From Rebecca billardiae RCC1528 (taxonomy: Eukaryota > Protista > Haptophyta), in NCBI GenBank assembly GCA_965240325.2, contig OZ251235.1:868001-932000 (forward strand): a DNA stretch of 64,000 bases, read 5' to 3'. The notes under the pieces were generated by a model. It was not told the origin of the DNA. It worked only from the letters and a program-made list of their open reading frames with translations, and made no database searches. Below, in pieces: positions 7,948-32,998 of this stretch. Numbering within the stretch: position 1 is the stretch's first letter; each line of letters begins with the position of its first letter. The translations under genes were made by a program, and so were the position numbers.

Positions 7948-9507
7948 CAGTGATGCATAAACTGTGCCCTGGCGGGCGGGGGTGTCGTCGGCGGGCCGTG
8001 CCAGTGCTGTCGCAATGTTTCCTCTGCGGGTCGTTTGCGTCTTTCCACATGCGCTCGTGGCCGTGAGTGACGGACAGTCCGAGGACCAGTGGCGGTGACA
8101 CCTGCCAAGTTCTCCGCCACTCCCACTGGCGTGTACACGTGTCACATCCGTGCGCATCAGCGAGGCCCACACCCACGAGGGAATGTGCAGCACGCGGGGC
8201 GGGGCGGGTTGCCCGTTGCTCCGCGCGAGCGCGAGTGCGCGCTGTATGTGCCGCATCTCGACCGCGATGGCGTAATCGAGCGTCTCAGTCGCCGCCGACG
8301 AAGCCGCCAGAGTAGATCGTGTGCATGTCCTGCCGCCAGCCGAGAGCGGTCGTCACGAGGATGCTTGCCGACGTCTGCTCCGGGCATGATGGGCTCGGCG
8401 CAGGTCGCGTTGACGTCGTGCACGGCTGCCACGCTGAGCACGAGCGCGTTGACGTTCGCGCGGTCGTCGCTCTTCGCCTCGTGCGACAGGTCTGGCGCCT
8501 GCATGTTCGGCGGCACGAGGAGCTGTTGGTTGTGCGCGCGCGCGCACAGCGACAGCGTGTGCCACTCGCGATCGAGAGTGGGCACGAGCTGCTCGAGCAA
8601 ACACACGATTCGCAGCGCATCCGTCACCGGCGTGACGACGTCCGCCTCGTCCCGCAGCGCCTGCGCCATGGACGAGGATGGCGCGGCGATGTTGCATGCT
8701 CGACGTTTCGTCTCTCTGCGGATGGCATCACGGGCTTGTCTGTGTCACGCTGCGGCGAGGGTCGCCAACTCGCGAAGTCGCGGTTGCTGCCACGGCGACA
8801 GACCCGGGAGGCGCGTCCGCTGCGCGTCGTACGCCGTTGGCGCTGCGCTTCCGTCGCATTGGTCACCGTCGACGCCATGCAGGCCGGACGTGGGCTTCGG
8901 CTGAGGGACCGCGAGCGACGTCGAGTCCGGCGCGCGGATTCCGGCGATCGAGTTCAGAAGGCCGCGCCAAATCTGCTTGCGTCGCGTGCGATGGCGCTTC
9001 CCGCCCGCGAAACACCTCGTGATGAGGGCCTTTCCGCACCGAGCTCGACGCGCGGCGGTGGATCGCGCGAGGTGTTGGTCGTGCGCAGCGCTTGGTATTA
9101 TGGCCCGTGCGAGCGCTCGACGTGCAAGTCGCCCGAGGACCGCCCCAGGTCGCACGATCGTGTCGACGCGCCGAGCGTACCGCTCCCGCAAACGGGTCGA
9201 CTTTGGCCCCCGTTCGACCTGCACGCGAGACGACGAGGGCAGCAATCGCGAATCGGTCGAAAACCCGTCTCGGGACTCCTCGCGCGATGTCGATGCCGGC
9301 GTTGGATTTGGCGCGCGCGGCCCACGCGCTCCGCGCCATCGGTGGTTTGTTTTCGGCCGAGCGTCCCCAGAGTGGGCCCTGCGAGGGCGCCCGGTAGTGA
9401 GCGAAGCGATTTTCTTTTCTAAGAGAGGCGATTTTATTTTCTTTTCCATTTCTTATCTTTTTCCCGGGCACTACAAGGGGCGGACCTAGTGAGACCTACG
9501 GCCCGCC
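7948..9507 (-). mobile_element. Putative AT-flanked asymmetric-end (Helentron-like) non-autonomous element, family C
   Basis: Terminal ACGGCCCGCC|AT (9498-9509) is inverted to GGCGGGCCGT at 7990-7999. An AT lies at 7946-47, exactly 42 nt outside it. GAGCGAAGCGA motif at ~9399. The terminal hairpin is degenerate. Confidence 0.5.
8157..9449 (-). pseudogene. Interrupted ORF of unknown function inside the family C element
   Basis: ORFs 8745-9449 and 8157-8669 are in the same frame, separated by one TGA (ELATLAAA*HRQARDAIRRE...MAQALRDEAD). Confidence 0.35.
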
Positions 9508-9620
9508 ATATGTGTGTGTGTGTATGTGTGTGTGTGTGTGACTGTGTGTGTGTGTGTGTGTGTGTGTGTATATATAAAATATATGTGTGTGTGTGTGTGT
9601 GTGTGTGTATATATATATAT
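9508..9620. repeat. Compound (TG)n/(TA)n microsatellite
   Basis: Seen directly. Confidence 0.97.
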
Positions 9621-9892
9621 GAGCCGACGTCAGTTGTATTGCCGCTTTGGATAGTGTGGTCAGTTGTATTGCCAAAAGCACGTTATGACTACCGTGGTCA
9701 GTTGTATTGCCGTTTTCAGTCGTAGTATGGGTCAAGAATATTGCCGCTGTTTTGGATAGTGTGTCAACAATATTGCCCCTCAAATACTGGCTTCAAACCA
9801 ATGACCCTTTCACACTACTTGGTTCACGAATATTGCCGTTTTCGAGCTTGAACATAGTCTGCTCAGAAATATATTGCCCTTTCCATATAAAG

Positions 9893-29959: not shown

Positions 29960-31087
29960 TAGCACTCCCGAGCGCGCCCTTGCCCGCGCGGCCCGACCTG
30001 ATGAGATACAGTCGGAGCGTTGCGCCAGCTGGACAAACGCGAAGGACCCAAGACCCAGGATCCTTGGACTTGTGGAGGGCCCTGGCGAGACCTGCACTCG
30101 GATCGGGGCCCTCTCTCGCTGTGCCGCTTTCGGCGCACGCCCGGCCGCGCGGCGGGCGACGTGTGCGCACGCCGTGCAGCTCGCGGCGCGTGCGCATTGG
30201 CTAGCTGGCACACGTCTCCCGACGCACAAGGCAAATGACCGCAGCTGGGATGCTCTTTCGCGCCGCGAGAACGCGTGCGAGGCCGGTCGCCGCGGCCGAG
30301 CGGCGTGGCCGTGCCGCCTGCACGCTGGGCGCCCATGGACGTGGCTTCGCCGCGCGCGCTGAGGCCGGCGAGCGTCGCGACCGACTTCCACGACGCGTGC
30401 GACGCGCCATCTGCCCGCTTCCTTGCCTGTGACGCACGTCTTCTGCGGGCAATGGCGACTCGCGCGCCCATGCGGCGGCGAGGCCGCCTTCCGCCGCGCT
30501 TTGCCGTTGGACAGCGCGGAACATTTCTTTTTGAAAAGCGCCGATCTGAAAAGACCGGAAGGCGTTTGTCCAGCTGGCGCAACGCCCCTGGGCCTGTACT
30601 AAGAATAAGAGACCCACACAGCTCAGGCAGGCGAGCGGTTGACGCCCGCCAAGCCCCGCCAACCTCCAACCGTCACCGCCCATGAAGCCGTCGTCGCCGA
30701 TGGTAGCGCCGCCGGAAAAATTCGTTCAGCCGTCCGCCTGCGAGGCCTGGACGAGGGCTGCGGCCGCCTCGCGGCGCGCCAGCGCCCGTCGTCCTCGCCC
30801 ACGGCAACTCGGCAAGCCATCAACGTGCCACTCTGCATCGTCAGTGAATCAATCGGACCTGGGACTGTCTGTTTTGTGGCGCGCGGTGCCTTTGTACACC
30901 GGTACACCGGCCAGTGTTGGATGGCGCGTCAAATTTATGCGTCAATGAGTCAATCACGCCAGTGTCAGGGAACCGTGACTGAGTTCTGACGAATACGATG
31001 GCAGAGACATGAGTTGTACAGTACAACAGCGTGCAGTTGCACGTTAGATATATGCTGCGCTGATATGCGCCGCCATCAAGCTGATAT

Positions 31088-32998
31088 GACCGCGTTCCGC
31101 GGTCCTTCCGTAGAACCAACGTAGTTAGGGGCCCGCGGTGCACCCTCCGTCGGCTGCTGTCTCAGTCTGGTCAACATGGCGGGCCGATGAGGACTGTCGC
31201 CGCGGGCCCGCGCGAAGAAGTACGGACGGCGGCCGGGGCAGCGGCGCGCGCGCGCAGGGCGAGCCTGCCTTGAGGTGCTCGCGCTGCGCCACGCGCTCGA
31301 CGACGGGCCGCTGGTCGCTCAGCCGGCGCGCCTCGTGCCGGCAGAGCGAGAGCGCGCACCACTCTGCTGGCCCCACCCCCAGCGGCCCCAGCCTGCGCTC
31401 ACGGCGCTGCGCAGCCGCGCACCGAGAGGCGAGACCGAGCGGAGCTCGGGGTGGAACGAGGCGAGCGGCGGGTCGCGCCTGCCGCCGCGCGTGCGCGCCT
31501 GCTCCACCGCGCCACCGTGCTCGCCCGCCGCCTCCTCCGCCGCGTCGGCCTCGAAGCCACGGCGGCGGCCAGCCAGCCTCCGACCGAGGCGGAGCCCGTG
31601 CGTGCTCACTCACCCGGCGCGGTGGCGCCCTCGAGTCGACGGCCGTCTACTCCACAGCTGGCTGCTCGAGCTGCTGCACGGGGCGTCGCGACGAGGGCGC
31701 CGCGCGCGCCCAGCGCGTCCGTCGCCGCGTCGCGCAGCGCGTCGAGCTCGGCGCCGCGCTTCGCCAGCTCGGCGCCCAGCGCCTCCGTGCGCACTCGTGC
31801 TCATTCGATTGTCGTCATCGCGCTCGTCGGCTCCGTGGCGAGCCCGCGGGGCGGACGAGCGGACTACTGCGCGCCGCAGCAGGAGCAGCGCGCGGCGCGC
31901 AGCGCTCCGCGCGCAGCAGGGCCGTCTCCTCATCCACCGAGTGCACGGTCTGCGCGGCGGCGACGGCGGCGCGCGCCGCCGCGGGGGGACGCACGCGCTG
32001 CAGGCCGAGATGAGTCCGGCCGCCGAGCCGCGGTGGCGGCGTCGGCGTGCGCGCCGGGCGAGGTGGGCGAGCTCACGCGGCCCGGGCTCAGCACGCCCGT
32101 GCACAGCGCCGGCCGCGGTGGCGAGCGCGCACCGCTCGGCCGCGGTGGCAACCGGCTGAGCGGTTGATGTTTGAAGCCGCGACGGGTCAGCGACGTCTCC
32201 GATGACTCGGCCATGATTGTGGTCCTCCTTCGCCCACGGGTGCTTTGTCGACCATCCGCTGGAGGCGCGCCAACGTCGGTACGGACAGCGCCTGCTTGAG
32301 CGTCGTGATGTGCATCAGCTCGAGCCGGCCGAAGATGGGCCCGCCGACGGCGATGATCATGATGTGCGCGCTTGCCGCTTGGGCACCCGTCCTCGTCGCG
32401 AGACGCTGGCGGGCGGGTAACCCGTTTTTCTTATTTCATTATGGCAAAGGAGGTTCATCCATCGAGGCAGGCGGGTAACTTGGTTTAACCAGCGCTATTC
32501 AAAACAATCCCTTCATTATGACACTCAGGAGGTTCATCCATCGAGGCAGACGGGTGACTTGGTTGGACAAGCGCTATTGAAAAGAATCTCTTTTAATATG
32601 ACGAGGCGGTTCATCCATCGAGGCAGGCGGGTAACGTATTTGAACAAGCACTATTCAAAAGAATCTGGCCTCATAGCTGTTTTCGACCCAAAACAATCAA
32701 ACGTCGCTCGGCAAACTCGTACTTCAGCATACAAGAGGGGTAGGAATACTCACTTGTTTCACCCCCGGGGTATCTGATCCCACGTCCGTCCATAGTAGAT
32801 ACAAGAATTGCAGCGGGCGCGGCCTTTTAAGCTGTGATGGACAGCATACCCCCCCTCAAAAAGTCGAAAACTCACCCTCCAACAGCCCTCAAAATCGTCC
32901 CCCATCCCCTTTTCTTTGATCAAAAGATCTTTTTTGACAACGTAGTGAGGGCCCCCGGCGGGGCTCCACGCTACGCGCTCCGCCCTGCACCGCGGGCC
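31088..32998 (-). mobile_element. Family A copy 4
   Basis: AT + hairpin at 31088-31104, sub-terminal repeat at 31130-31142, terminus CCGCGGGCC|AT at 32998. About 31335-31795 is an inverted homologue of 13585-14060, and 32670-32790 of 14370-14490. Confidence 0.85.
32410..32665. repeat. Diverged ~60-80-bp tandem repeats inside copy A4
   Basis: GGTTCATCCATCGAGGCAG.CGGGT.AC occurs three times. Confidence 0.8.

Follow-up and report, generated by a model that had tools for sequence, protein, structure and literature searches.

Autonomous copies of Helitron2/Helentron (HLE2) elements encode RepHel, which combines a Y2 HUH Rep with a Pif1-like helicase. The ends of Helitron2 elements carry short asymmetric inverted repeats, with the 5′ repeat 0-2 bp from the end and the 3′ repeat just upstream of a hairpin; a second hallmark is a hairpin at the 5′ end in which the 5′ repeat takes part, and related families are reported to differ by compensatory changes (Bao and Jurka 2013, PMC3627910). 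The HELIANO study of 2024 describes canonical HLE2 elements as having inverted repeats of 12-16 nucleotides (nt) and a stem-loop after the right repeat, and includes stramenopiles among the hosts (PMC11417382). FoHeli1 and FoHeli2 of Fusarium oxysporum and the Helitron2 elements of Chaetomium globosum insert between TNAT and A; the FoHeli hairpins have GAA triloops, and the 3′ inverted repeat is drawn ~20-40 bp from the 3′ end in the FoHeli figure (PMC5148889). Here, we describe six mobile element copies in a 64,000-nt stretch of Rebecca billardiae RCC1528 (assembly GCA_965240325.2, contig OZ251235.1, positions 868,001 to 932,000), referred to below as the window. We assign these copies, with a probability of roughly 0.7, to three new families (A, B and C) of this known kind: non-autonomous HLE2 members with a common end architecture and little common sequence.

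All six copies have the same layout. A 5′ repeat of 10-13 nt begins at the first position of the element, and its complement lies 42 nt before the 3′ terminus, upstream of a tail in which a 25-nt spacer precedes a terminal hairpin of 17 nt. The inverted repeats are 13 nt long in family A, 12 nt in family B (11 of 12 paired) and 10 nt in family C, and they co-vary across the families. The elements show strand asymmetry, with 5′ and 3′ ends that are unlike each other in every copy. Element sizes are alike in the three families (1.5-2.4 kb), and an AAAAAGA motif is present 45-85 nt from the 5′ end in each of them. The original prediction, made from the sequence alone, had proposed a single layout shared by families with different inverted repeats, and had already recognized the four copies of family A, the 25-nt spacer with a shared core, the co-varying hairpin of 7 bp and 3 nt, and the 42-nt offset of family C. 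All of these are borne out here, with the qualification that the family C hairpin contains only a 4-bp stem.

The family A copies were delimited by direct reading of the sequence and by a scan for the end geometry. The 13-mer TGCACCGCGGGCC occurs nine times in the window with at most one mismatch, against 0.66 expected, and seven of these matches are exact. These matches mark four 5′ ends, at 12563 (+), 14201 (+), 18586 (-) and 32998 (-), and also four 3′ ends, at 14136 (+), 18692 (+), 16445 (-) and 31088 (-). Each 3′ end consists of the inverted repeat, exactly 25 nt and the hairpin GACCGCG-GAA-CGCGGTC. Copy A1 (12563-14136, + strand, 1574 bp, flanks gttAT and ATaat) contains the 5′ repeat at 12563-12575, a 5′ hairpin at ~12563-12611, the 3′ repeat at 14082-14094, the spacer at 14095-14119 and the terminal hairpin at 14120-14136. 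Copies A3 (16445-18586, 2142 bp) and A4 (31088-32998, 1911 bp) lie on the minus strand. Their terminal hairpins occupy 16445-16461 and 31088-31104, followed by the spacers (16462-16486 and 31105-31129), the 3′ repeats (16487-16499 and 31130-31142) and the 5′ repeats (18574-18586 and 32986-32998). Copy A2 (14201-18692, + strand) begins at 14201, and the nearest 3′ end on the same strand is at 18638-18692. If these two ends belong together, A2 is probably a single element of ~2350 bp (14201-16444 and 18587-18692) interrupted by the insertion of A3.

What the family A copies all have in common is limited to 150-230 bp from the 5′ terminus and 63-71 bp up to the 3′ terminus, where identity is 88-99%. 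The interiors are mosaic: A1 and A4 have 500 bp in common at 90% identity, and A2 and A3 have short pieces in common. Conserved ends combined with mosaic, non-coding interiors are usual for non-autonomous Helitrons. We found no interior similarity of family B or C to family A.

Family B is represented by one copy on the plus strand (18710-28328). Most of its 9.6-kb span is a nested Ty1/copia retrotransposon, and ~1848 bp are its own sequence (18710-19203 and 26975-28328). The 5′ repeat is located at 18710-18721, the 3′ repeat at 28275-28286, the spacer at 28287-28311 and the terminal hairpin at 28312-28328. The ends of this copy read as originally quoted, and the repeat extends to 11 complementary positions of 12 (8 perfect). 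Family A elements have the termini GGCCCG... and ...CGGTC, and the family B element has GGCGCA... and ...CGATC.

The 3′ ends of families A and B align without gaps over 57 columns. Within the last 42 nt, 13 of the 25 spacer positions are identical. The spacer core AACTNCGTNNNNNCTAC has exactly five matches in the window, all at the 3′ ends of the four A copies and the B copy; 0.33 matches are expected at one mismatch or fewer. Both spacers also contain two pentamers at matching positions, 11 nt from one another: CTACG twice in A, and CTTCG followed by CTACC in B. The terminal hairpin has a 7-bp stem and a 3-nt GNA loop (GAA in A, GTA in B) and ends at the last base of the element. In the alignment of the two hairpins every cell pairs, and three of the seven base pairs are changed on both sides between the families. 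Covariation this good was obtained in only 6 of 500 shuffles, and controls in which the alignment was slid were 17-53% paired.

The single family C copy (7948-9507, 1560 bp) is on the minus strand and has AT on both sides. Its 5′ repeat (GGCGGGCCGT, 9498-9507) and 3′ repeat (ACGGCCCGCC, 7990-7999) are complementary at all 10 positions, and the 25-nt spacer (7965-7989) and 17-nt terminal segment (7948-7964) give the same offset as in families A and B. The hairpin formed by this segment is weak, and its folding is no better than that of shuffled sequences.

In A1, A3, A4, B and C, the fold of lowest energy pairs the 5′ repeat with downstream bases, as in the second Helitron2 hallmark. These folds have z-scores of -1.6 to -3.3 in family A, -2.1 in B and -1.3 in C. 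In A1, A3 and A4 the hairpin spans ~50 nt and is formed by the 5′ repeat (GGCCC-CGGTG) and a downstream near-copy of the 3′ repeat; a G-to-A difference in A3 improves the pairing. In family A, the sequence CTCACTACGTTG located directly after this hairpin duplicates the beginning of the 3′ spacer, CCTAACTACGTTG, and the 5′ end therefore holds a miniature of the pairing between the 5′ and 3′ ends. The hairpin of A2 is different. There (14214-14255), exactly 25 nt separate the 5′ repeat from a perfectly paired hairpin of 17 nt, CCCTTAA-CTC-TTAAGGG, a spacing equal to that at the 3′ ends. The stem of the family B 5′ hairpin pairs a run of 14 C residues (18718-18731) with a run of nine G residues (18762-18770).

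The dinucleotide AT lies directly outside the element at all six 5′ ends and at five of the six 3′ ends; the 3′ flank of A3 begins with CT instead. AT on both sides had been part of the predicted layout of families A and B. The 5′ and 3′ flanks are TTAT and ATAA for A1, TCAT and ATAT for both A2 and A4, TTAT and CTTG for A3, TTAT and ATAT for B, and ATAT and ATCC for C. The 5′ flank is thus TNAT in five of the six copies and ends in T in all of them, and the first base of the 3′ flank is A in five of six. In this set of only six copies, five have T or C ahead of the 5′ AT, family C has T, and none has A. On the other side, where five copies have AT, the next base is A in four of them, C in the fifth, and never T.

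A longer target duplication is not found, since cognate 5′ and 3′ flanks are no more alike than non-cognate ones. Longer or variable duplications of the kind that the Chlamydomonas CRe elements reportedly produce were rejected on the same comparison, and a TA duplication (a Tc1/mariner-type element) was rejected because the flanks of A2 and A4 read CAT. The 7-mer TATCAGC occurs in both flanks of A4 (31070-31087 and 32999-33016) at different offsets; this is within the range of unrelated flank pairs and is probably due to chance. The insertions occupy the few AT-rich patches of a genome with ~70% GC, and microsatellites adjoin the elements, namely an (AT)n tract of ~100 bp at 12448-12548 and (TG)n/(TA)n tracts at 9510-9620.

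The copies lack coding capacity and are non-autonomous, as anticipated. A Pfam search of the open reading frames (ORFs) inside all copies in the window, covering the HUH Rep/helicase and DDE proteins that had been suggested as candidates, gave nothing significant, and the one interior ORF that was searched for homologues has none. Comparison of the copies with tblastx shows no protein-level conservation. A degenerate pattern built from the family A and B 3′ ends has no matches in metagenome, viral and prokaryote-genome collections. An 811-residue Exo_endo_phos protein encoded in the window was considered as a Helentron endonuclease and rejected, as it is a host protein of the PDE12/CCR4 type that lacks a Rep or helicase part.

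Several lines of evidence support the assignment to HLE2, among them the mosaic interiors and the strand asymmetry noted above. The inverted repeats, the 5′ hairpin and the 3′ hairpin agree with how Helitron2 ends have been defined in print. The 5′ repeat begins the element and the 3′ repeat is subterminal, upstream of a stem-loop; repeat lengths are within the described 8-16 nt; and compensatory changes link the families (PMC3627910, PMC11417382). In addition, the position of most insertions, after TNAT and before A, matches that of FoHeli1/2 and the Chaetomium Helitron2 elements, which also resemble the present copies in having a 3′ repeat tens of bases from the end, hairpins at both ends, and GAA triloops in hairpins. 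The FoHeli elements differ in having a fungal host and known autonomous copies that encode RepHel.

Several features weigh against this assignment or depart from the usual HLE2 pattern. AT on both sides of the element also fits a 2-bp target duplication, and the flanks are not the T-runs described for HLE2 elements (insertion between TTTT and T or C, or between T and T). The elements open with GG if the T of the flank is left out of the element, and Helitron2 elements usually begin with T. The distance of 42 nt between the 3′ repeat and the end is slightly above the published 20-30 nt (PMC3627910) and ~20-40 nt (PMC5148889). The 3′ hairpin of family C is poor, and the 64-kb window contains no RepHel gene or fragment.

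If the copies are HLE2 members, a pathway for their mobilization can be suggested, in which the enzyme, the single-stranded route and the absence of target duplication are all inferred from the ends. RepHel produced by an autonomous copy elsewhere in the genome would act in trans, nicking one strand at the 5′ end, right after the flanking TNAT, and its helicase would then unwind the nicked strand in the 5′ to 3′ direction. Recognition of the 3′ end may involve three parts: pairing of the subterminal repeat with the 5′ repeat, which would displace the 5′ hairpin; the 25-nt spacer, in which two CTNCN pentamers lie 11 nt from each other; and the terminal hairpin with its GNA loop, after which the strand would be cut. 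The resulting single strand, probably circularized, would join AT-rich DNA between T and A in one orientation without duplicating the target. For family A, the expected circle junction is ...CGCGGTC(AT)GGCCCGCGG....

The flanking AT could instead be a genuine 2-bp duplication or a crossover core, generated by some enzyme that is not an HLE2 RepHel. The six copies would then belong to a separate lineage that is convergent on, or ancestral to, Helitron2 ends, an explanation that we consider unlikely. Such a lineage might represent a third Helitron-like clade, one of which has reportedly been found recently in Paramecium, or a non-HUH transposon with single-strand hairpin ends. The original prediction correctly saw the Helentron/Helitron2 layout in these elements and still suggested an undescribed lineage, on the grounds that Helitron2/Helentron elements are confined to T-runs and that the termini resemble those of ISL2EU transposons. 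The first argument does not hold, because FoHeli1/2 and the related Chaetomium elements have TNAT before the insertion and A after it (PMC5148889), and the second fails because the likeness to ISL2EU is limited to the dinucleotide. With both arguments gone, the claim of an undescribed lineage is left unsupported, and the earlier interpretation as a whole is supported in part.

A different single-strand HUH element is also unlikely. The possibilities include a Replitron-like element with a Y1 Rep and no helicase, and a eukaryotic counterpart of IS200/IS605 or IS91, which would recognize hairpins and a target tetranucleotide in a like manner. Such an element would be consistent with the one-strand hairpins of both ends, with the conserved TNAT tetranucleotide directly 5′ of the element and with orientation-specific ends. 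Replitrons are known from stramenopiles, including Labyrinthulea, and have short direct terminal repeats of ~6 nt (PMC10288648); they resemble the present elements in their right-end palindrome and probable HUH copy-and-paste mechanism. Comparison of the family A and B termini reveals no such direct repeats beyond the flanking AT, and Replitrons lack asymmetric inverted repeats. The combination of these repeats with a 5′ hairpin has been described for HLE2 specifically.

It is similarly doubtful that only family A is a true repeat and that the pairings in B and C are chance matches in GC-rich DNA. Families B and C are single copies, and the hairpin of C is not significant. A scan of the same geometry with a bare 8-nt repeat also gives 1-7 chance matches per shuffled window, and for this reason B and C were accepted on the additional features that they share with A rather than on the repeat alone. 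For B these are the gap-free 3′ alignment, the spacer identities and the compensated hairpin, and all three families have the 5′ hairpin, the AAAAAGA motif and a similar size. The matches within the inverted repeats of B (11 of 12) and C (10 of 10) also speak against chance.

An origin as cut-and-paste DDE transposons, be they ISL2EU/PHIS elements or other 2-bp duplicators, is very unlikely. ISL2EU elements (PHIS superfamily) have terminal inverted repeats, duplicate AT in the context A-AT-T and favor AT-rich DNA, and their autonomous copies contain a DDE/THAP transposase and a YqaJ ORF (PMC4482050). The AT at both ends of five of the six copies and the preference for AT-rich sites would agree with such an origin; the AT would be a true duplication and the 42-nt tail an extra cis element. 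The A-AT-T context is missing, however. The 3′ repeat is internal, and the 42 element nucleotides beyond it are conserved in all A copies and homologous in B, so the two ends would present unlike terminal sequences to a transposase. The 5′ hairpin and the hairpin covariation have no role in this mechanism, and the window contains no DDE, THAP or YqaJ ORF. Least credible of all is an element that integrates from a circle by serine or tyrosine recombinase-mediated crossover at an AT core without a staggered cut: it would account for AT on both sides and for the lack of a longer duplication, but no recombinase ORF was found, the six insertions are at six sites that share only a short AT-rich motif, and the end architecture would be left unexplained.

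The elements form part of a transposon island at 7.9-33 kb that is flanked by host genes. The window as a whole (GC content 0.54-0.77) is nuclear DNA in which genes occur as long single ORFs, and it has no tRNA genes or Rfam matches. The copia element nested in family B (19204-26969, + strand) is an insertion outside the element class described here. Its long terminal repeats of 553 bp (19204-19756 and 26417-26969) are 100% identical, its gag-pol region is an open ORF of 2217 amino acids (19756-26409), and it is bounded by a 5-bp duplication, ATATC (19199-19203 and 26970-26974). These features suggest that it inserted recently and may be active. Within the copia insertion, the excess of A over T is strong (skew 0.19-0.22) and the GC content is below the host level.

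A further repeat element is located at 9620-12440, between two microsatellites, and a related piece is present at 63138-63202. Several copies of GGTCAGTTGTATTGCC lie near its left end, with one inverted copy at 12411-12426. An inverted repeat of 30 nt (9893-9922 and 11165-11194) surrounds an orphan ORF of 264 amino acids (10189-10980, minus strand), which has no Pfam match and only two weak, uninformative matches among 1.8 billion representative sequences.

Host genes in the window encode a four-domain ion channel, a CBF/NOC4 protein, a triose-phosphate transporter, an RCC1-repeat protein and the PDE12/CCR4-type nuclease. The channel gene (40543-45237, + strand) specifies a voltage-gated cation channel with four Ion_trans domains in a single ORF, and is unusual in lacking introns. 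A 156-bp unit (52 codons) is repeated in tandem ~17-18 times at 54921-57716, with 92-94% identity between units, inside an ORF of 1608 amino acids (53905-58731, + strand); the array has a strongly negative GC skew. Among named homologues of the NOC4 protein, the best are from oomycetes (~32% identity), and metagenome and Logan proteins reach 60%. In exact protein look-ups, CBF/NOC4 was the sole match, on a 3.8-kb Logan contig; the RCC1, PDE12-like, ParA-like and TPR genes that neighbor the insertions are not on record. The only public contig found (Logan ERR14847148, ~58970-62800 of the window) stops at repeats on both sides, and these elements evidently interrupt assemblies of the genome made from short reads.

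The elements described here open no new class. If they are HLE2 members, they are probably the first HLE2 families described in a poorly sampled and very GC-rich lineage, and insertion between TNAT and A would have a second, distant example after the fungal one. The three families constitute a natural covariation data set that points to the end features likely to matter, which include base pairing between the 5′ repeat and the 3′ repeat, the fixed spacing of 25 plus 17 nt, the CTNCN pentamers one helical turn apart and the GNA-looped hairpin. These features may be of use for annotation tools, which still overlook non-canonical Helitrons, and for thinking about how RepHel finds the 3′ end of an element.

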